From the NCBI GenBank assembly GCA_020137815.1, contig CM035353.1, positions 6,572,001-6,636,000 of the forward strand: a stretch of DNA of 64,000 nucleotides, written 5' to 3'. The first letter of the stretch is position 1. Each line of letters starts with the position of its first letter. Source of the DNA: Hormiphora californensis. Lineage: Eukaryota > Animalia > Ctenophora. Of this stretch, positions 17,595 through 39,670 are shown one piece after another. Both the position numbers and the translations under genes were made by a program. The notes under the pieces were generated by a model, which was given only the letters and a program-made list of their open reading frames with translations, ran no database searches and was not told where the DNA came from.

Positions 17595-20500
17595 ATGCCA
17601 ATTGAGAAGTTTTTGATACTATTGGATGCCTGCCCAGCCAATTTTCTACGCTGGTCAGAATGTTTCCGGTAAAGTCAGGCTTGAATTGAAGGATTCTCTA
17701 GACTTTCGAGCTATCGAGCTTAAGCTAAAAGGTTATGCAGATGTAAGTTTAGCATAAAAATGTAAGTTTAAAATACCTTGTTAATTGACAAAATTATTAT
17801 TAGTTTGTTCTATAGGTATCTTGGACAGAAAGAAAAAGAAGGGGTGATAACTGATAAAGCAGAGTGGGTGACCTATAAGGGTCATGAAAAGTACCTAGAC
17901 GTTTCACAAAATTTATTTGGTGATGCCATCACTGATGGAGAGAAAACATCCCTCGTTCAAGGCGACCATGAATTTCCATTCTCCATAACACTTCCACCGA
18001 ATCTACCATCAACTTTTGTCGGACAGCATGGTATGTGACTTCCGGGCTCCCTTGAGGCTGTGGCAGTGGATTACGGATCCCTACAGATAGAACTGCCGGG
18101 GAGTAGAGCTATAGCTTCCTATAGGAAGGTGTCAATACGCCAAACTAGAAGTACTACCTATGTGGTCCCCTATATTATTATAATGGTCCTGGCCTAGGTA
18201 GCTCTTCTTCACACTGTTAACCTCACAGGAAAAGTGATATACAAGCTCTCCGCTAAAATTGATCGTCCACGGAAGACAAACGAGCATACCAAAATGTATC
18301 TAAGGGCGCGATCACACCAAGATCTTCGAAACAATTGCTTCGAAGAACCAAGTTGAATAACACACAGATCTTTTTTTTGGTGCGGCTAAGAACTTTGTTT
18401 TATGAATAAAGCCTATTTTAAAACAAACTTTTTTAAAAATTTGTGCTGGCAATTAATGAATTTATCAAGAAGGACTATTTTAAACTTCCGGTTAAAAAGT
18501 TAAAAACCCTTGTCAGGCAAAATTACGTCAAAGATTATGAATTTTAAACTTCAACAAAGGCTCAAGTTTGATATTCATTTTCCAAAATTAAAACAAGTTT
18601 AATTTGATTATTTAATTTTATTGGAAAATCAAAATCGTGATGATCGGAACACAAATTCACAAATTTTTTTTAAATTAAATTGGAAATTAAATTTAAGTTG
18701 CATTGCAATCTTTCTATATGCATGAACTACATTACTACAAAATTTTAGGTCGTTATTTATAGCAGAACAGAAAATATACCATTTTTAGTTGCCTTGTTCA
18801 GGAAATGTGCAGGGGGTCGAAATCAGCGGTGCAGGGGAAAGATGGTGCAGGGGCAAAATTTTAATTACTTATAATTAATTAGTTAAATTAAAAATAAGAA
18901 ATCCAGCCTTTTTATGACTCGTAGTTATACTACTAGAACATGCACACAAAGTTTCATTTCGAAAAAACAAACGGTTTGGCCACAGTTTGAATATCAAAAT
19001 TGCAAAAAATGTGCAGGGGTATTTGCCCCTGTACATTTTCAAAAAAAGTGCAGGGGGCCCTAAAAAAGTCCATTTTTGCATGCCTATAACTAATTAATTA
19101 ATTAATTTTCAATACTCCCACTTTTCGAATATCATTTTTTATGATTGAAGAACATTCCTACAAAGTTTCAAGTCGATATTTCAAGCAGAACGGAAGAAAA
19201 ACCGTGTGCAGGGGCACGCGTGCAGGGGCAAAAAATCAAAATGTACAGGGGCAATGTGCAGGGGCAAATTTTGGCAGCTTATAATTAATTAATTAATTAA
19301 AAAATCAAAAATCCGGCCACGTTATGACACGTAGTTATACTACTAGAACATGCCTACAAAATTTCAGGTCGATATCTCAAACGATGTGGCCGCAATCGCT
19401 GCCTGAAATTTGCCCCCCCCCCCCCCCCCCCCCCCCGAAAATCTTCTATTCTTCTGCTATATAGGGCCGTCACTTTTTGGATTTGGTGCAGGGGCAAAAA
19501 TTTTTTTTTTCGTTTTTTCTGTTTTCTTCGGGTCGGAGGTGCCTGCCGGCACCTAAATAGGGCCGGCTTTTTGGATTTGGTGCAGGGGCAAAAATTTTTT
19601 TTCTTTCGTTTTTTCTGTTTTCTTCGGGTCGGAGGTGCCTGCCGGCACCTAAATTCCTAGGTAGCTCTTCTTCACACTGTTAACCTCACAGGAAAAGTGA
19701 TATACAAGCTCTCCGCTAAAATTGATCGTTCACGGAAGACAAACGAGCATACCAAAATGTATCTAACCGTTCTTTCAGTTTACGATTTGAATCTTCAACC
19801 CGGTAAGAGCTTTTAGATCTTGGGCAAACGTTAATTTGACGCAATTCCAACGCCGTATATTAGCTTGGCCACATTGATGCCTGAGTGAGATCGAGGTCGC
19901 GCAGCGACCGAGATCGATCTCACATCTAGGCCTCCGGCCCGTTATTGATTTTAGAGCAAACTTTTTCAAAGACCTGGCTGCAAGGAACTACTGAACCGAT
20001 TTACATCTCGTTTGTTGCTCCTGGCAGGTAATTGTCTCTAGTTTTACGGAAAATACCCGCGAGTATCAGCATTTGAGGAATAGTGGGTCAAAATTGACTC
20101 TAAACATGGGCAATTCTTTAAAGACCTGGCTGCAAGCTCCTACTCGGTCCTGGGACAATCTGCGGGTACTGGGAGAATCGTCATGGCCCTGTGAGCATGG
20201 GAAAATACCCGCCGATTCATCACGATGCGAAATGAGGCGGTAATTGACGTTTGAGTAGTGCTAGGTCAGCTAAAAAGGTCTCCCAAAACAGTCTGTCGCG
20301 CGGGATTTGCTGAAAAACGTGCTTTACATCGCGCGCACGTGAGTTCTTGCTGTCCACGGGCCGGGAGCCTATTCTTCGCGGAGCGAGAATAGGTTGCATT
20401 GGAGCCAATATATTAGCCCGGTGCGAAGAGGACGGTCTTATATGAGACAATCATGTCTTAAGCGCTCATGGTACCGCCAGATAGGAGATGTTCAATATAA

Positions 20501-21175
20501 TATTGGAAGTTATTTTGAAAGCTACCATGGCAACACACGTGATTCTACTATTATTTTCAGGTGCTGTAACGCCAATTGCGAACCAAGGAACGAAAACTTT
20601 TGGATGCTGCTGTTGCAAAACTGGTCCCCTGAACGCCTCACTCTCCCTCCCAAAAACTGGTTATGTGTGTGGGGAGACTATCTTCTTCACCGCTGAGATT
20701 GAGAATCTCTCCCGCAAAGCGATCCTCCCGAGCGGTGAAACAAGAAAACCGAATGATCGTCTCACACACACAACCCAGAATTGAACCCGGTGCAACCTTT
20801 ACTTGGAACAACGTTACCTTACAAATCCCCCCTATCTCTCCCTCGGACCTTATCAACTGTACCATAATCGAATTGAACTACAGAGTGACCCTATCCGTTG
20901 ATCCTTCTGGTGTTGGGTTTGACCTGAATGTCCCGGTTGACATTCTCATCGGTACCATCCCCCTGAAGAACCAGTTCCAGCAGATTGTTGCTGCACCAAC
21001 TGCACCTATCCCATGGGGTGCAGCAGGGGATGAAGCCATGCCCCCACATCCCAGCTACAATGAGGTGATCCATGGTAAAACAGAGATTGGTAAAGATGGT
21101 GACTCTGACGATGAGGGATCAAGTGCTGGTGATAAACTATTTGCCCCGTACTATCCAACCTATACCTTTCAATAA
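17595..21175 (+). pseudogene. Alpha-arrestin (ARRDC/TXNIP family) gene with three frameshifts. Exons at about 17595-17742, 17816-18030, 19692-19801 and 20561-21175
   Basis: Motifs: QPIFYAGQNVSGKV, ADVSWTE, GDHEFPFSITLPPNLPSTFVGQHG, KVIYKLSAKIDR, GCCCCKTGP, TGYVCGETI, PVDILIGTIPL and a PY-like tail. The frame breaks at about 17630, 17851 and 20725. Confidence 0.85.
18304..19655 (+). mobile_element. Non-autonomous repeat (TGCAGGGGCA-motif family) with a hairpin terminus, possibly Helentron/Helitron2-like
   Basis: A related copy lies inverted at 41263-42210. It ends in the hairpin AGGTGCC-TGCC-GGCACCT-AAAT, and the last ~95 bp are tandemly duplicated. Confidence 0.7.
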
Positions 21176-21931
21176 ACTGTTACAGCGCCGCTTGTAGTGG
21201 AGAAACGGTTTTCAATAAACGGTACGGAGACGCGTGCACTAAACTAATAAAGTGTACTTTATATTCACAATCTAGGGCTGTGTTTGATCAACTTGACCGT
21301 CAACTTCAACCTTGCGCGTCTTGTTACGGTATTTCATCCTGTATGGCGGCGCCATACCCCATTTGATTGGATTTCATCCAAAGAGTTTGTCGCGACACCG
21401 TTTTTGTCGAAGAAGCCGTGTCCCAGTTCCGGGTAGAAGATACAAAAACGGTGATTATTTTGGTAAATTAGTTGTATATAAATACATACAGTATGTTAAA
21501 TTTAATGTACGGTCTGAAAATAAGAAAAAGTTCTCAAAACCCAGATGTGATATGATTATTGACTACATAGAATATATCCCAATTACATATAGCATTTATG
21601 GATATCAACATGACCACTCAAAGCTCATTTTTCATGAAAAGAACTGTATGTAAACAGGGTAATAAATAATTTAAAATGGCTTGCACCTCCCCCAAATAAT
21701 CTAAAAGAGAATCCTGACAAATACAGCTCAGTTCACTCAATACTAGTTGCTACGATATTGTTTGGTCATTAATGATTAACTGGATATATGGTGAAAGACA
21801 ATGTTATTACATACACAGTTTCTAATTTTGCAACCCATATGATACTGGAATGTTAGTATTGCAGTGCAACTTGTTGAGTAACAACAAAGTGCAACTACAT
21901 TTGGCAATAGTGTCCAAAGTGTTCAACGATT

Positions 21932-24505
21932 CTACACAATATCTCCTCCATACCACTCCCGGCTGGTAAAAAGGGCGGAACAACCCCCACCATCATGGTC
22001 AGAATGAACCTTTGAATCTGGAATCTCTTCAGATGACATGTCACTGCAGGAGGAGGAGATGGAGGATACAATAGCTTTCAACTCGGGTTTCTCATCACCC
22101 TCATGACAATAGTTGCGGAGGCGGTTATAAGCACAGTGGGCGGAGATTCTGCTTTCACTGTCGTAGTCCATCAACTCCGAAACCAGGGCCTTCACCACCG
22201 ACATGATCTGAGGGCAGAGAGTTTAGATGTGGAATAGAAGAGGGGATTGCAAAACATAGAATAGGGATTGATATACTTTCTCTTTCTCTTTCTTTTTCTC
22301 TCTTTTACCTGACTGTAATGTGGAAGGCTCCCAGGAAGTTGTGGTGAAACATGCCTGACCACAACTAGATCTACCAAATCTCGTTGTGTGAAGTCACTGG
22401 GAAGATCATACTGGAACACGTGGGTATACCGACCTGAATGGAGGGTGACATGTTGTGGGTATACCGACCTGAATGGAGGGTGTCATGTTGTGGGTATACC
22501 GACCTGAATGGAGGGTGTCATGTTGTGGGTATACCGACCTGAATGGAGGGTGTCATGTTGTGGGTATACCGACCTGAATGGAGGGTGTCATGTTGTGGGT
22601 ATACCGACCTGAATGGAGGGTGTCATGTTGTGGGTATACCGACCTGAATGGAGGGTGTCATGTTGTGGGTATACCGACCTGAATGGAGGGTGTCATGTTG
22701 TGGGTATACCGACCTGAATGGAGGGTGTCATGTTGTGGGTATACCGACCTGAATGGAGGGTGTCATGTTGTGGGTATACCGACCTGAATGGAGGGTGTCA
22801 TGTTGTGGGTATACCGACCTGAATGGAGGGTGTCATGTTGTGGGTATACCGACCTGAATGGAGGGTGTCATGTTGTGGGTATACCGACCTGAATGGAGGG
22901 TGTCATGTTGTGGGTATACCGACCTGAATGGAGGGTGTCATGTTGTGGGTATACCGACCTGAATGGAGGGTGTCATGTTGTGGGTATACCGACCTGAATG
23001 GAGGGTGTCATGTTGTGGGTATACCGACCTGAATGGAGGGTGTCATGTTGTGGGTATACCGACCTGAATGGAGGGTGTCATGTTGTGGGTATACCGACCT
23101 GAATGGAGGGTGTCATGTTGTGGGTATACCGACCTGAATGGAGGGTGTCATGTTGTGGGTATACCGACCTGAATGGAGGGTGTCATGTTGTGGGTATACC
23201 GACCTGAATGGAGGGTGTCATGTTGTGGGTATACCGACCTGAATGGAGGGTGTCATGTTGTGGGTATACCGACCTGAATGGAGGGTGTCATGTTGTGGGT
23301 ATACCGACCTGAATGGAGGGTGTCATGTTGTGGGTATACCGACCTGAATGGAGGGTGTCATGTTGTGGGTATACCGACCTGAATGGAGGGTGTCATGTTG
23401 TGGGTATACCGACCTGAATGGAGGGTGTCATGTTGTGGGTATACCGACCTGAATGGAGGGTGTCATGTTGTGGGTATACCGACCTGAATGGAGGGTGTCA
23501 TGTTGTGGGTATACCGACCTGAATGGAGGGTGTCATGTTGTGGGTATACCGACCTGAATGGAGGGTGTCATGTTGTGGGTATACCGACCTGAATGGAGGG
23601 TGTCATGTTGTGGGTATACCGACCTGAATGGAGGGTGTCATGTTGTGGGTATACCGACCTGAATGGAGGGTGTCATGCTGTACCTGTCAAGTGGGTAGCA
23701 GCTACCTCCCATAGTACAGCTCCTGTACTGTACAGATCACAGTTTAGTAGGGCAGTAGGGGTGAACAGGTCCACGGTACAGTCCAGGAGTTCAGGTGACA
23801 TGTAGAGGGACGTTCCAACCTGCAGGATAAAATATCAATAGTACCTCAACTACAACGTATGGGGGTAGTGGGGAAACAATGTCACAAGATTTCCATAGAA
23901 ACTTATTGAACCTGTCAGAAAATGGGTTAAATCATGAGACAGGATCAGCGATCTGCAGCACCTCCCCCAGACATGATGAAAAAGATAGTGGCATCCCTTC
24001 ATAGTGATCATGTACCTCTCTCTAATCATGTACCTCTCTCTTGCAATACACTGTCACAAGATGCTTCTGCAGACTACCCTCGACAGTGTTTTCAAAGTAG
24101 CGTACATAAAATACATGTACAGTGATGCAGCACGGATCGTTATTTTATATTCACCTGTCGAATGGTGTTGGAATCAAAGCTCCTCACATCCAGAGTTAGA
24201 TCAAAATCACCCAGAACACATCGCCCCTCCAGGTCAACCAGGAAGTTACCTGTCTTCACATCTCTGTGTGCCAAACTGAAACATTTATACATCTTTAGCT
24301 GAAACATTTCTATCTTAAGTCTGAAGTTGAGGGATAAACATATTCTTCTTTATATTAGGGGAATGAAAAAGAGCTGTTTATGATTTCCGCACCGTGTTTG
24401 TTAGTTATACCTGAGTCCTGACTCCTGACCAGAAAGCACATCGAATCCGTGGATATAGGAAATTGCAGTGAGAATATCTTTAGCCAGCCGCAAAACAACT
24501 CTGTC

Positions 24506-24604
<99 letters not shown>

Positions 24605-24851
24605 AGAGAGAGATCAGAGAGGGTTACGGATTACGGGCCCCCGAACGGTACATAAGATGGGGGAGAGGTTTGGGGGGGGGGGGGGGGGTTGGGTATTTGG
24701 AAGATGGGAGAAAAAGAAAAATAGTGGTTGACGGGAGAAAGTAAAAAATTGTTTGAAGTCGACTAAACGAAAATGAAACAAACTTCGCCTTACCATGGCT
24801 TCCTTACGGGTCAAAATACAAATTCAGGAACTCTCCATCTTTAACCCTATT

Positions 24852-29265: not shown

Positions 29266-32200
29266 ACAAGAAAACGGGAGAGTGTCTACCCGCAACTGAG
29301 AATGATTAAATTATTTTTTTTGGTTGCAAGTTCGTGCTGTCTTGACACAAACCAATGCCACTCCTTCCATTAAGTATGCTGCATTTTACTAGGACACACT
29401 ACTATAATGCAGCTAGGTGAATATATTACCCAGTTCGGCACCATATTGTTATACATTGGTTGCTACCCGGCTGTCCGAACTGGACACAACTTTGGTGAGC
29501 GCTGGAAATTGGAACTGAAAACTCATTTATCACAAAACTTAGCATACACCTCTGACAGTAATCAAGGGGGCTTGATTGGCAAAGTAAATGAAACTTATCA
29601 CTTTTCTAAATTTGTTAATGGTGTCCTTTCACACAAGTTAGGTGCGACTAATATATGCTGACCAACAACATCTCTATGTACTAGTATGTAGTGTGTTCTA
29701 CAAGCTACATGGGGTAGCTTTTATCACCTTTAATGCCCCCATGTCCTATATATTCTAATGTAGCCAAACATTTGTGTGAGTTTGACACAGCTCCCTAAAT
29801 TGGGGGGAGACACACTGAGGTTGGTCACGCGCGTTCAACTCTCAACCGCTCGAAACACACTGAAGTTCGAAGTTTCGCGGAAAAGTTCGAAGTTTCGCGA
29901 AAACCCGTTTTCGGCTGAGAAATCATTTGTAAGAGGCTTACTTATCTACTGGTACATCTCTCGAGGTGTCCTTTATCTATACCGAGTCAATTTCATCGTT
30001 TTTAAAATTTTTGGTGAATTGGGACAACTGTGACCGAATTAGCCAAAAATTTCAAAAACGGTGAAATTGACTCAGTATGGATAAAGGACACCTCGAGAGA
30101 TGTACCAGTAAATAAATTATGATTTCTCAGCCGAAAATGGGTTTTCGCAAAACTTCGAACTTCAAACTTCAGTGTGTGTCGCGAGGTTGAGATTTGAACG
30201 AGCGCGCCCAACTTCAGTGTGTCTCCCCCCATTGAGACACACCCTGTGATATGTTGCCATTATAGCCACTACTACAGTATATCAATACAATGTGTGCAGC
30301 TGTATTTACTATCCTATATTAAATAAACAATGCAGGGCGGTACAATAGAAAATACCTGTTGAACGCATCCTGCTATATATTGTAGCTAATTTTGCAGTGA
30401 TCTTAACCGCAATACTGTTTGGATACTGATGGAGCTATCGATTTAGCTCTCTCGGGACGAGAGGATTTCCTTGTTTAGATTGAGTTGTGCAGTCAAAGAT
30501 CGATATTGATTCTGAATACCTCTGATTTTTATTTTTTGTGCGTCACCCCAAACCTGTTATGTTCTAACCCTCCTTACCAGAAACAGAGCTAGTCAAGTCA
30601 AAACAATACCATACAGTTGATAATAACATACTATATTATTATTAACTCTATGGTATTGTTTTGACCGACTAGGCACTAAATAACAGCACCTAGTGACACA
30701 CAAAAAACTATATACAGTCGGACCCCGATTTAACGGCATCCTCGGGGGAAAGGGTTTTGTCCGTTAAATCGGGGTGTCCGCTAAATCGGGTTTCAAATAC
30801 TGTTAATTTCCTATATCGGGGGGAAGATTATGCTGCCGTTAAATCGGGGTGCCGCTAAATCGGGGTCCGACTGTATAGCACCAATCCCATGAAATGAAGC
30901 CACTCCTACCTCGACAAATCAGCGTTACGGTAGAAAACTTTCCAATCCGTAGTATTTTGATTGTCTCGTCAGTTGTAGGCCATGTTTTTTCTGCTGCTGC
31001 CACACTCATTACCGGGTCAGTATAAACCTTTGTTTCTTGACCGCATAGGTTCTTCTGTAGAGGGGGAGGGGCATATCAATAGTCACATTTACGCTTTTCA
31101 TTCTGTTTTGCGTTCTTGATAGCCGTGTATAATAATCGAACCGTCCAGGGTGCCATATATGATACACTTACATAGCAAAGACCGCTGCATATTCCCAGAA
31201 GTAGAATAAAGAGGCAGATAGTGCAAGGTAGGAGAAGGAATACGACCGAGTAGTTATCTGAAACTAATGGGTTGTGATTAGAGCTGCATTTAGTTGTTAT
31301 CTGAAACTAATGGGTTGTAATTAGAGCTGTTTAATTGTTGGGTTGTAATTAGAGCTGTTTTAGTTGTTATCTGAAACTAATGGGTTGTAATTAGAGCTGC
31401 ATTTAGTTGTAATCTGAAACTAATGGGTTGTAATTAGAGCTGTTTAGTTGTTATCTGAAACTAATGGATTGTAATTAGAGCTGCATTTAGTTGTTATCTG
31501 AAACTAATGGGTTGTAATTAGAGCTGTTTATAATAGTTGTTATCTGAAACTAATGGGTTGAAATTAGAGCTGTTTAGTTGTTGTCTGAAACTAATGGGTT
31601 GTAATTAGAGCTGCATTTAGTTGTTATCTGAAACTAATGGGTTGTAATTAGAGCTGCATTTAGTTGTTATCTGAAACTAATGGGTTGTAATTAGAGCTGC
31701 ATTTAGTTGGGAGCATTTGATGAAATAACTGGGTTGCTAATCAGGGATTTACCATCACATATTGATGGAATTGCTGGAATTTATATACTGATTATCAATG
31801 ATTTGACAACTTCCCCGAAACCCCGAAATCGCCCGCCGCTCTTCTTCTCTCCCCCATCCCCCTGATTATTGTCAGACATATAAAGACAATGAAGAAGAAA
31901 TTTTGGTCACGAAAAATGACGTAAGCTACTTAAAAAGATCGAAAGTTGTCATAATTTTCTGGTCACGTCTACCCAATTATTGTAGCCCCCCACCTTTAAA
32001 AGCTTGCAATATAATTATACCCTTACATTTAGAACCCGCTTCTTCTCTTTCTCCTCCTAGAGTGTTGAAGAACCATGTGGGCGTGGGTTCAACCAGCACT
32101 AAATCTACTTTTTCGGTAGAGCAGCTGGGGCCTCTACAATAGTGAGATGTCGTCATGTCTGAACCATGATCTCCAATATCAAGGTACACCCTCGTCTTAC

Positions 32201-36969: not shown

Positions 36970-38747
36970 CGGTTTTTTAAAAAAAAAATTTTAAAAAATT
37001 AAATGTTGGTCAGTCCAATGCTCTGACAAATGTCTTGGGTTTTTATTAAATTTTTTAAAAAACCTCTCTTTTTTAAAAAATTTTCCCCTTTTTTTCCCCT
37101 TTTATTTTGGGGGGGCGTGGGAAAATTTGGGGGGGAAAAAAAATTAAAAAAAAAAAAAAGGGGGGAAAAGAGGAAAAGGGGGGGAAAAAAGAAAAAAAGA
37201 AAAGAAAGGGGGAAAAAGGGGGGGAAAAACCCGTTTTAAAGAAACCCCCCCCAACCCCCAAAAAAAACAAAAATTTTTTTTTTGTCTCTTGCTCAATCCC
37301 CCCCCCCCAAATTTTTTAAAAACCCTTCCCCCCAAAAAAAATTTTTTTCCCCCCTTCCCCCTTTTTTTTTTTGAAATTTTTTTGGGGTTTTCCCCTTAAA
37401 TTTAAAAGGATGTGTAATATCATTGTGCAAGGGCCCCCTTTTTTTATGGGAAAAATTTTTTGGAAAAAGAAGAAGAGAGAGAGGGAAAAGGGGAAAAAGG
37501 GAAAAAAAAAAAGGGGGGGGGGAAATTTTGAGGAAGGGGGAAAAGGGGGGGGTTTTCCCCCTTTTTTTTTTTAAACCCCCCTTTTTTTAAAAAAAAAAAA
37601 ATTTTTAAAAAACCCCTTTTTTTTAACCCTTTTTTTGGGTTTTTTTTTTTAAACCCCCCCCCCCTTTTTTTTTTAAAAATTTTTTTAAAAAAATTTTTTT
37701 CCCCCAAAAATTTTTTTGGGGAAAAAATTTTTTTTTTTTTCCCCTTTTTTGGGGGGGGGGGCCCCCTTTTTTTTTTTTTTTCCCCCCCTTTTTCCCCCTT
37801 TTTTTTTTTTTTGGTTTTAAATTTAAATTAATTTTTATTTTTTTAAAAATTTAAAAAATTTTTTTTTATTTTTTTTTTTTTAACCCCTTTTTTTTTTTCC
37901 CCCCCCCCCCCCCCCCCAAAAAAAAAAAACCCCCCGGGGGGCCCCCCCAAAAAAAAATTTTTTCCCCCCTTTTCCCCCCCCTTTTTTTTTGGGGAAAAAA
38001 ACCCCCCCCCCCCCCCCCCCCCCCGGCCCCCTTTTAAAAGGGAAAAAAAAAAAAAGGGGGGGAAAAAAAAGGGGGGGGGGCCCCCCTTTTGGCCCCCCCT
38101 TGTTCCCCCCCCTTTTTTTTTTTCCCAAAAATTTTTTTTTCAATTTTTTTAAAAAAAAAAAAAAAATTTTTTTTAAAAAATTTTTTTTTTGGGTTTTTTT
38201 TTTAAAAAAAACCCCCAAAACCCCCGGGGAAAAAAAGTTTTGGGGAAAAAAAAATTTCAAAAAAGGGGGGGGAAAAATTTTTTTTTTTTTTTTCCCTTTT
38301 TTTCCCTTTGGGTTTTTTTAAAAAAAAATTTTTTTCCTTTTTAAAAATTTTTTTTTTAAAAAAAATTTTTTTTTTTAAAAAAATTTTTTAAAAATTTTTA
38401 AAAAAAAAAAAATTTTTTTTTTTTTTAAATTTTTTTTTAAAAAAAAAAATTTTTTTTTTAAAAAATTTTTTTTCTTAAAAAATTTTTTTAAAAAACCCCC
38501 GGGAACCCCCCCTTTTTCCCCCCCCCCTTTTTTCCCCCCTTTCCCCCCCCAAAACCCCCCCTTTTTAAAATTTCCCCCCCTTTTCCCCCTTTTTCCCCCC
38601 TTTTTTTCTTTTTTTTTTCCCCCCCCCCCTTTCCCCCCCTTTTTCCCCCCCCCCCCCCCCCCCTTTTTTTCCCCCCCCCCCCAAAAACCCCCCCCCCCCA
38701 GGGAAAAAAAATTTTTTTCTTTCCCCCCCCGGGGTTTCCTTTTTAAA

Positions 38748-38778
<31 letters not shown>

Positions 38779-39670
38779 CCCTTTTGGGGGGGGGGGTTTT
38801 TTTTAACCCCCCTTTTTTTTGGGGGCCCCCCGGGGGAAAAAAATTTTCCCCCCCCTTTTTTTTTGGGGGGGGGGGAAAAAAAAAAAAAAAAAAGGGAAAA
38901 AGATTTTTTCCCCACCCCCCGGGGGAAAAAACCACCCCCCCTTTTTAAAGGGGGTTTTTAAAAGAACCGGCCCCCAAAAACCCCAAACCCCCCAAACCCC
39001 CCTTTTTCCCCCCAAAAACCCCCGGGGGGGGGCCCCCCCCCCCCCCCAAAAAAACCCCCCCCCCCCCCCCCCCAAAAAAGGGGGGCCCAAGGGGGGGAAA
39101 AAAAAACCCCCAAAAAACCCCCCCCTTTCCCCCTCCCTTTTTTTTTCCCCCCCAAAAAAATTCCAAAAAAAAAACCCCCAAAAGGCCCCTTTTCCCCCCC
39201 GGGGAAAAAAAAAAAAGGGCCCCTTTTTAAAAAAAAACCCCCCCCCTTTCCCCCCCTTTTTTCCCCCGGGGGGCCCCCCCCTTTTCCCCCCCAAAAACCC
39301 CGGAAAAGGGGGCCGGAAAAGGGAAAAAAAAGGGGGGAAAATTTTTTTTTTTTTAAAAAAAGGGGGGAAAAAATTTTTTTTTTTTTTTTTTTGCTTTTTT
39401 CCCCCCCTTTTCCCCTTTTTCCCCCCCCCCCCTTTTTTTTTTCCCCCGGGGGGGCCCCCCTTTTTCCCCCCGGGGGGGGGCCCCCCCCCCCCCTTTTTTT
39501 CCCCCTTTTTCCCCCCTTTTTTTTTGGTTTGTTTCCCCGGGGGCCCCCCCCCTCTTTTCCCCCCTTCCCCCCCCTTTTTTTTCCCCCGAAAAAAATTTTC
39601 CCCCAAATTTCCCCCCTTTTTTTCCCCTTTTTTTTAAAATTTTTTTTTTGGGGGGGGGGGGGGGTTTTTT
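36970..39670. other. Homopolymer-run block, probably a low-quality consensus or sequencing artefact
   Basis: It consists almost entirely of A/C/G/T runs, with small islands of normal sequence. The ORFs are only K/G/F/P strings. Confidence 0.8.

Follow-up and report, generated by a model that had tools for sequence, protein, structure and literature searches.

One intron of a predicted receptor kinase gene of Hormiphora californensis consists, apart from its donor GT, of a single tandem array in which the intron's 3' splice junction is copied over and over. This array is probably a young 35-bp minisatellite that arose from the duplicated 3' splice junction of a pre-existing intron and came to fill it, the whole being spliced over to the last acceptor. 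It belongs to a known kind of repeat, the junction-spanning minisatellite, of which it is an extreme case: its unit falls within roughly 10-100 nt, is repeated head to tail, and consists of exon sequence together with the adjoining splice site. Coordinates below refer to the window, i.e. the whole 64,000-nt stretch of DNA that was analysed.

Host gene and anatomy of the array

By homology, the host gene is a putative BMPR2-like receptor Ser/Thr kinase gene, a candidate for the type II receptors of the TGF-beta family. Its intact kinase exons carry the HRD, DFD and SPE motifs and the ESRISAHCA tail, and a hydrophobic exon lies at about 31180-31250 of the window; single exons match Pkinase only below the Pfam cut-off. 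The best full-length homologues are a Bolinopsis 'BMPR2-like' protein and a Mnemiopsis protein carrying PF00069/PF07714. The exons on either side of the array, A and B, match contiguous sequence in the ctenophore BMPR2-like homologues, in agreement with an earlier note on this DNA, which had placed the repeat in an intron of a kinase gene. The gene was also compared with that of another ctenophore (genomic contig L017), referred to here as relative R. The features concerned, in order of transcription, are:

23684..23819, minus strand: exon A, VGTSLYMSPELL...AATHLT plus 1 nt, ending in phase 1, with acceptor ttttatcctgcag/ (weak Pkinase match below the Pfam cut-off; 68-69% identity to Bolinopsis XP_063678420.1)
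23682..23683, minus strand: donor GT, in the context ACAG/GTACAG (sequence read and repeat analysis)
23659..23683, minus strand: first partial unit, 25 nt, GTACAGCATGACACCCTCCATTCAG, of whose last 23 nt 22 match the unit (unit splitting)
22434..23658, minus strand: 35 units of 35 nt, GTCGGTATACCCAC + AACATGACACCCTCCATTCAG, each with a copy of the acceptor and the start of exon B (Tandem Repeats Finder and splitting)
22448..22448, minus strand: single variant of the last unit, catgAc > catgTc (unit splitting)
22434..22435, minus strand: putative authentic acceptor AG, alone in preserving the frame (local translation; homologues continue ...Y(T/Q/V)HV(F/Y)Q...)
22309..22433, minus strand: exon B, 2 nt + RYTHVFQYDLPSDFTQRDLVDLVVVRHVSPQLPGSLPHYSQ, with donor TCAG/GTAAAAG (53% identity to the fused exon of relative R)
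22208..22308, minus strand: intron between exon B and the last coding exon, 101 nt (sequence read)
21932..22207, minus strand: last coding exon, IMSVVKALVSELMDYDSESRISAHCAYNRL... (68% identity to lobate homologues over ESRISAHCA)

A Hormiphora protein for the gene was found neither by searching exon A against 1.84 billion representatives nor by word-index searches of protein collections; the top match of the exon A search, P0001, is an unrelated repetitive protein and was set aside. In the metatranscriptome runs X10 and X17, compared over 19800-22783, the gene itself had no match and only an element at ~19.86-20.45 kb of the window was matched. This high-copy element shares sequence with both runs, and probably accounts for their overall share of matching words.

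Tandem Repeats Finder reports one array, at 22420-23681, with a period of 35, 36.1 copies, 99% matches and no indels. Cutting the minus strand at GTCGGTATACCCAC gives a first unit of 25 nt, which begins at the donor G (23683), and 35 units of 35 nt, making an intron of 25 + 35 x 35 = 1250 nt, which is the composition that the earlier note had claimed. Thirty-four of the 35 full units are identical, the exception being the last (22468-22434), which carries A>T at 22448. Every unit of the array ends in CCCTCCATTCAG and is followed by GTCGGT, and the CAG|GT (pyrimidine tract-AG|GT) that had been claimed for each unit boundary is present at all 35 internal boundaries. The 35-nt unit comprises 21 nt of intron end and the first 14 nt of exon B, the exonic share being assigned by homology; as had also been noted, the latter part matches the start of exon B exactly. 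The unit contains no second AG, and a genome-wide search found it at no other locus. The donor GT comprises the only intron bases outside the tandem array.

The last unit had been credited with a substitution that lengthens its pyrimidine tract. The substitution itself stands, but an adaptive lengthening of the tract is not supported: A>T at 22448 also destroys the best branch-point-like TGAC of that unit, and the first partial unit has a private difference of its own (ACAGCATG vs ACAACATG), so that edge variants are not unique to the unit carrying the acceptor. Private variants are often retained or acquired by units at the edge of an array, as in the first unit here. In a predicted RNA fold, the GGUAUACC palindromes of adjacent units pair with one another; an RNA structure that hides the decoy acceptors was rejected, as the fold energy is ordinary (z = -1.26).

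The same gene contains a second array:

31251..31708, minus strand: second, older array, ~10 copies of a 43-nt unit, ~91% alike (repeat analysis)

Its 43-nt unit includes the acceptor tttcag and the 5 nt (ataac) with which the transmembrane exon starts, and its boundaries read CAG/AT and thus lack donors. Tandem repeats constitute 13% of the H. californensis genome (PMC8527503), and 9.8% of a 264-kb genome sample in which we counted 34 minisatellites. CAGGT occurs in two of these 34 minisatellite units, against 1.2 +/- 1.1 expected from shuffles, a sample too small for this comparison to carry weight. The 35-nt array might be read more broadly, as a working row of dual-specific AG/GT sites removed by variable multi-step routes, recursive or nested, and as one case of a genome-wide Hormiphora habit of amplifying splice junctions into minisatellites, which would be a main way of intron growth in this lineage and would perhaps be tolerated or shaped by very active spliced-leader trans-splicing; we regard this combination as quite unlikely. 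Separately, the published H. californensis spliced leader was found in 605 genome copies, vs 0 for a reversed control.

Reading frame and routes of intron removal

Exons A and B were joined and translated locally, the homology searches having been run exon by exon. The frame stays open through the conserved C-terminal kinase exons only with the last AG: retention of one or two units leads to a frameshift and a stop, and retention of at least three to TGA. This bears out the earlier contention that the AG at 22434 alone keeps the kinase frame and that earlier acceptors give a frameshift or TGA. Homology and reading frame suggest that the mature mRNA joins 23684 to 22433. Precisely where the two exons meet, the relatives have 5-6 residues that the predicted protein lacks; the splice boundary may have moved, or the gene model may be slightly off. 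No alternative model restores these residues, because the unit has no other AG and because the alternative donor GAG/GTAGCT, which we rejected, gives a stop with every acceptor.

The array can be accounted for by a short series of steps. A segment spanning the 3' splice junction (21 nt from the end of the intron and 14 nt of exon B) would have been duplicated in tandem in a pre-existing phase-1 intron of a functional BMPR2-like gene, and the resulting VNTR-type array would have been expanded and homogenised until it filled the intron, the donor GT excepted. The 35 upstream AGs would then be pseudo-acceptors whose use as the final junction leads to a premature stop, and decoy-spliced products would presumably be lost to mRNA surveillance. 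The array is probably just tolerated and serves no function itself.

It is also conceivable, if unlikely, that the AG/GT boundaries serve as dual-specific or recursive splice sites and that the array is excised stepwise. The donor would first be joined to a nearby acceptor, and ACAG/GTCGGT would then regenerate a 5' splice site; splicing from an internal GT to an AG would likewise make the array shorter in the RNA and leave its form unchanged. In addition to the CAG/GT at every boundary, the strength of the putative internal donors is compatible with such a route. In a simple count of U1 complementarity against CAG/GTAAGT, the decoy CAG/GTCGGT scores 7/9, which is within the range of the real donors of the gene, and the real donor CAG/GTACAG scores 6/9; the internal GTs are therefore not obviously dead. 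Relatives also have donors of the GTC type, namely GTCAGA in L017 and the one inferred for lobates, and AGGT dual-site arrays are used stochastically in human UBC (PMC10809524). The short introns of the host gene and of relative R measure 83-105 nt, or ~3 array units, and typical introns of ~100 nt would favour near acceptors over one that is 1250 nt off. The finished junction, however, tells against stepwise removal. It recreates the identical ACAG/GTCGGTATACCCAC context, so an efficient recursive donor would re-splice it, drop the 125-nt exon B and shift the frame; moreover, the exon junction complex normally represses re-splicing at regenerated sites (PMC6224609, PMC8184009). Known ratchet points sit in very long introns (10.1101/006163), a single 35-nt unit is far below any intron seen in the host gene or relative R, and the sister array, also in this gene, lacks GT altogether. 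In perfect direct repeats, template switching by reverse transcriptase and in PCR is reported to produce ladders like the 35-nt RT-PCR series named in the earlier note (Roy and Irimia 2008, cited in PMC2812944).

To describe the repeats as 'GT...AG micro-intron units', as the earlier note did, is an overstatement. A GT follows each AG because exon B starts with GT, the sister array with its CAG/AT boundaries is free of donors, and 35 nt is far less than the 83-105 nt of the introns; such a GT does not point to 35 micro-introns at work.

The array in independent DNA and the age of the intron

The existence of the array, which the earlier note read from the sequence alone, is supported by independent sequencing. 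Run X5, an independent DNA sample of the same species, covers exon B and the last coding exon at about 97% identity; its short reads reach depths of 34,000-90,000 in the repeat bins vs 400-1,100 in the flanks, an excess of ~100-fold. The marine metagenome X7 yields an exact 65-nt contig inside the array, and since 65 = 35 + 31 - 1, this is the size that a perfect 35-nt tandem repeat takes as a cycle in a 31-mer assembly graph. The array is therefore not an assembly artefact. The published assembly was built from PacBio CLR reads that are noisy and average 2.7 kb in length, and odd homopolymer blocks occur elsewhere in the window (at about 37.1-39.5 kb), so that one might suspect the long-read assembler or its polishing of having made the array, or its uniformity and copy number. 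Given the depth in X5 and the cycle contig in X7, such an origin is extremely improbable and, for the array as such, has largely been refuted already. The assembly has 36 copies; the depth ratio in X5 suggests tens to ~100 per haplotype, a rough figure, as contig depths are not copy numbers.

The reading frame of the host gene is under selection, as five of seven coding differences in X5 are synonymous and both indels, which lie in the last coding exon, are of 3 nt. This bears on whether the expansion has upset splicing to the point that little or no functional receptor is made, the allele being either a slightly harmful polymorphism of recent origin or a first stage in the decay of the gene. 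In favour of such damage, 35 rival acceptors are identical to the real one through +14, stops occur in every mis-spliced product, and an array with 0 substitutions in 1190 nt, in a species with 2% heterozygosity, is very young and has left selection little time. We nevertheless consider it very unlikely that the allele is harmful or null, as the array is multi-copy both in a second, independent individual and in a metagenome from the wild, and so is no private accident; every kinase exon is open, the coding differences around the array show the pattern just described, and the gene tolerates another, older acceptor array.

The zero substitutions among 34 units are consistent with a very recent tandem expansion. 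The intron itself, by contrast, looks old. In lobate ctenophores, the genomic ORF P0016 departs from the Bolinopsis/Mnemiopsis protein right after CQVA, continuing G-Q-I-W-T-stop. This ending fits G/GTCAGATTTGG..., which gives the same position and phase as THLT-G/GT in Hormiphora, and the early end of the ORF suggests that lobates, too, have an intron of phase 1 at this codon. As lobates seem to share the intron, the array would have enlarged an existing intron and not created it. The earlier note had described a snapshot of intron growth by duplication of an AGGT junction; growth of an existing intron is upheld, whereas the origin of a new one is not, given the position and phase that lobates seem to share.

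Relative R has four introns at the same places as the Hormiphora gene, but its exons A and B are fused into one exon and the intron is absent. This absence is what might be expected had the intron been gained by the type of event described by Rogers, in which an exonic AGGT segment is duplicated within a once continuous exon and the copies come to serve as donor and acceptor. Apart from GT, the intron is made up of the repeat alone, and ACCCAC direct repeats, present in both exons, flank the unit. Such a gain is nonetheless highly unlikely in view of the apparent lobate intron, and the composition of the unit also argues against it. The donor in use is GTACAG, not the repeated GTCGGT. Only 14 of the 35 nt of the unit are exonic; the other 21 nt show no above-chance match either to the end of exon A or to the coding DNA of relative R, and descent from the latter was rejected (MAFFT alignment, ~39% identity over 31 columns, which is chance level). 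One frame of the last unit gives an 'HVT' match, which was too short to count. Finally, the unit cannot be plain in-frame exon sequence, as three divides neither 25, 35 nor 1250 nt.

Comparison with known repeats and significance

The minisatellite that we propose has a close counterpart in intron 7 of human F7, where a 37-bp VNTR has an edge unit that spans the exon-intron boundary, and where the pseudo-sites, tested in minigenes, are normally silent though able to function (Borensztajn et al. 2006, PMC1557585). In both genes, the authentic splice site stands in a row of identical pseudo-sites. In F7, however, the donor is repeated in few copies and the authentic site comes first, whereas in Hormiphora the acceptor is repeated 35 times and the authentic site comes last; moreover, the Hormiphora array fills the whole intron, and each unit has a donor-like GT.

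The array also resembles the AGGT dual-specific array of polyubiquitin UBC, likewise a head-to-tail repeat with AG/GT at every boundary, in which the monomers are in-frame coding units of 228 nt and the use of sites alters monomer number (Duan et al. 2024, PMC10809524). The Hormiphora units, by contrast, are 35 nt long, do not code and are out of frame, and the reading frame is lost whenever one is retained. Human introns composed of tandem repeats, with splice sites in each unit and many alternative choices, were reportedly described by Zhuo, Madden, Elela and Chabot (PNAS, 2007); these arrays are said to be primate and mostly in repeat-coding genes.

A third likeness is to the ratchet points of recursive splicing (Drosophila zero-nucleotide exons, 10.1101/006163; RS-exons, PMC6224609, PMC8184009, PMC8605326), in which the acceptor adjoins a donor as AG/GT; here too, joining exon A to exon B regenerates a 5' splice site, as exon B starts with a donor-like GT. 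Known ratchet points are single and conserved, occur in very long introns, and are supported by junction reads, lariats and saw-tooth RNA profiles (10.1101/006163; PMC6224609; PMC8184009; PMC8605326). The Hormiphora intron is neither very long nor the place of a conserved site: it holds 35 identical young copies in 1250 nt and has no equivalent in relative R.

The array provides a natural test of 3' splice-site choice, with 35 acceptors that are identical from about -21 to +14 and of which only the last is productive. It is the acceptor-side counterpart of the F7 donor array, which was used to argue for scanning in the choice of donors. It also shows the speed at which a minisatellite can overrun and enlarge an old intron in a genome of which 10-13% is tandem repeats. 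As a single locus it is a curiosity and not a new mechanism; if similar arrays hold up genome-wide, the amplification of splice junctions could be a general feature of intron evolution in ctenophores.

An intron filled by a tandem array, and its host gene

We found that the intron between exon A (23819-23684, minus strand) and exon B (22433-22309, minus strand) of the receptor kinase gene is 1250 nt long, and that its donor GT is the sole part lying outside the repeat. Tandem Repeats Finder reports a single array at 22420-23681, with a period of 35, 36.1 copies, 99% matches and 0 indels. As read from the sequence, the minus strand runs ...GCTGCTACCCACTTGACAG|GTACAGCATGACACCCTCCATTCAG|GTCGGTATACCCACAACATGACACCCTCCATTCAG|... 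at the donor side and ...CATTCAG|GTCGGTATACCCACGTGTTCCAG... at the acceptor side. A script splitting the minus strand at GTCGGTATACCCAC set the unit boundaries; it gave a 25-nt first unit from the donor G (23683), followed by 35 units of 35 nt, of which 34 are identical and the last (22468-22434) carries an A>T change at 22448. The repeat-finder array and this division confirm the claim of the earlier note that the intron is built of GT...AG repeats. The 35-nt unit has no other locus across the whole 110.7-Mb genome.

In a search of 1.84 billion protein representatives, the translation of exon A (VGTSLYMSPELLDCTVDLFTPTALLNCDLYSTGAVLWEVAATHLT) matched, with 69% identity, XP_063678420.1, a 403-aa 'bone morphogenetic protein receptor type-2-like' protein from the ctenophore Bolinopsis microptera. 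A homologue was also found in Mnemiopsis leidyi. Exon B translates as (G)RYTHVFQYDLPSDFTQRDLVDLVVVRHVSPQLPGSLPHYSQ. Seven kinase exons, collinear and open, extend from 27768 to 21932 (local tblastn) and carry HRD, DFD and SPE motifs and a strongly conserved tail, ESRISAHCAYNRL; the DFD motif is common to this kinase and the lobate proteins. The published H. californensis spliced leader has 605 copies in the genome (reversed control, 0), pointing to that species or a very close one. No Hormiphora transcript product was present in the protein collections searched.

When k units were kept between exon A and exon B and translation was carried on locally into the last exon, the frame stayed open only at k = 0: one or two units shift the frame to a stop, and three or more introduce a TGA. 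Every k > 0 thus ends in a stop, which bears out the proposal that only the last AG keeps the kinase frame. Between the window and X5, an independent DNA run of the same species, exon B and the last exon show seven single-base differences (five synonymous, two non-synonymous), and the last exon has two indels of 3 nt each. Such differences are typical of a selected reading frame, and suggest that the kinase frame around the array is so constrained.

The array in other DNA, its age and its surroundings

The read comparison covered the acceptor side of the array with ten units. X5, which comes from a separate sample and study, matches exon B and the last exon at ~97% identity. Its contigs reach depths of 400-1,100 on the flanking sequence, against 34,000 and 90,000 in bins of the repeat. 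This indicates a multi-copy array with something like tens to a hundred units per haplotype, although such depths cannot be read directly as copy number. Marine metagenome X7 contains an exact 65-nt contig within the array; in a 31-mer assembly graph, the closed loop formed by a perfect tandem repeat of 35 nt has this very length (35+31-1). Together, these results show that the array is real and present in nature in more than one individual; the copy number of 36 is specific to this assembly.

The 34 units (1190 nt) show 0 differences among themselves, and the two alleles of H. californensis differ at ~2% of sites (PMC8527503). The ancestor of the units must therefore be far more recent than that of typical alleles, marking the array as a fast-turning-over VNTR. 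In a 264-kb sample of the genome we found 34 minisatellites and 9.8% tandem repeat (13% is reported for the genome; PMC8527503); of the 34, this array ranks first in both length and purity, and in a small test on the same sample CAGGT was not in excess in minisatellite units.

Both edge units carry private variants, a G in the first and the T at 22448 in the last. Such variants are usual in arrays, the edges of which join less in unequal exchange; the T may therefore be ancestral, and selection for it need not be invoked. The earlier note was right that this T is private and adds one pyrimidine to the tract, but a private variant is not unique to that unit, and the T also removes TGAC, the best branch-point-like motif of the unit.

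Other features of the window
31251-31708, minus strand: another, older array of tandem repeats within the receptor gene (43-nt unit, ~10 copies, ~91% alike)
24508-24613: (GA)n microsatellite of 106 nt, (CT)n on the gene strand
19864-20450: high-copy element of ~550 nt, with related copies near 18234-18356 and 19697-19816
~37100-39500: alternating homopolymer blocks (A, T, C and G runs), dozens of Tandem Repeats Finder rows
20663-21175, plus strand: 170-aa open frame, tail-to-tail with the 3' end of the kinase gene

The (CT)n tract directly adjoins ...ctcccgacag|AGTTGTT, the acceptor for the kinase exon starting at ~24497, and thus acts as the pyrimidine tract of that intron. The high-copy element has ~1000x single-copy depth in X5, and coverage by two RNA runs is confined to it (19.86-20.45 kb). 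It is the part of the window matched by marine metagenomes and metatranscriptomes, and probably explains their 'share of words' with the window. The homopolymer blocks look like a low-complexity or poorly polished region of the assembly.

Age of the intron

L017 (JGI metagenome contig Ga0307993_1030687, 1346 nt) is a marine metagenome contig from another ctenophore and is plainly genomic, with four GT...AG introns at the same positions as in the host gene. At 1059-1325, the counterparts of exon A and exon B form one continuous exon, making this a clean case of intron presence and absence between ctenophores. P0016, a 48-aa ORF from lobate-like genomic contigs, tracks the Bolinopsis/Mnemiopsis protein as far as ...NLYCQVA. 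There the protein goes on with VGAPAAGY but the ORF with G-Q-I-W-T-stop, as would be expected of read-in to a phase-1 intron starting G|GTCAGATTTGG. The lobate CQVA aligns with THLT of the host, directly after which the host intron begins, likewise in phase 1. The simplest reading would be an old intron common to Hormiphora and lobates and missing from the L017 species, through loss there or through gain ahead of the Hormiphora-lobate split; under either history, the array would not have created the intron. Of the earlier proposal that introns grow by duplication of an AGGT junction, enlargement of an existing intron therefore stands, whereas creation of one does not fit the lobate intron suggested by P0016.

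Right at the exon A/B junction, the host protein lacks 5-6 residues that both relatives have, which hints that the acceptor has shifted in this lineage. Aligned with the relative's coding DNA, the unit showed no homology above chance. Separately, P0015 (a Mnemiopsis-like metaclust model) follows the receptor to ...NLYCQVA, the same junction as the array intron, and continues into ~20 copies of a 7-residue repeat (RFVDNDS...), equivalent to a tandem repeat of 21 nt; a minisatellite may be present in or near the orthologous lobate intron as well.

Removal of the intron and comparison with known arrays

Sequence alone gives no reason to discount the internal GTs. The U1 consensus is matched at 7/9 positions by the decoy donor CAG|GTCGGT, compared with 6/9 for the real donor CAG|GTACAG. 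Splicing of the real donor to a decoy AG would regenerate ACAG|GTCGGT, which could splice again. However, the finished exon A-exon B junction has a context identical to the regenerated one, so a recursive donor that worked efficiently would cost the transcript the 125-nt exon B as well. In flies and mammals, the exon junction complex keeps such re-splicing in check (PMC6224609, PMC8184009). The unit is also far below the short introns of the host gene and L017 (83-105 nt), which makes excision of single 35-nt units unlikely; an internal GT-to-AG event would merely shorten the array, harmlessly. Further, the GT at the unit start simply reflects the GT with which exon B starts, and the 43-nt sister array, whose unit joins the acceptor tttcag to the first 5 nt (ataac) of a hydrophobic (transmembrane) exon, has boundaries that read CAG|AT and lacks donors, so that its AGs would be decoy acceptors alone. 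Multi-step removal is thus improbable in our judgement. The predicted RNA fold of six units is unremarkable (z = -1.26). On balance, we regard net excision of the array as a single intron as the likelier route, accompanied by some wasteful decoy use.

Introns built of tandem arrays were reportedly described by Zhuo et al. in 2007. The closest described case is in intron 7 of human F7, a 37-bp VNTR whose first unit spans the exon-intron boundary, so that the real donor is followed by identical pseudo-donors, functional but silent (PMC1557585); in human UBC, dual-specific AGGT sites form a tandem array and are chosen stochastically (PMC10809524). Unlike these, the Hormiphora array lies on the acceptor side with the productive site last in the row, occupies the whole intron, and is hosted by a ctenophore. 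It is an extreme case of an already known type of array, and would be of wider interest if multi-step removal were true, or if junction amplification were systematic in this genome.
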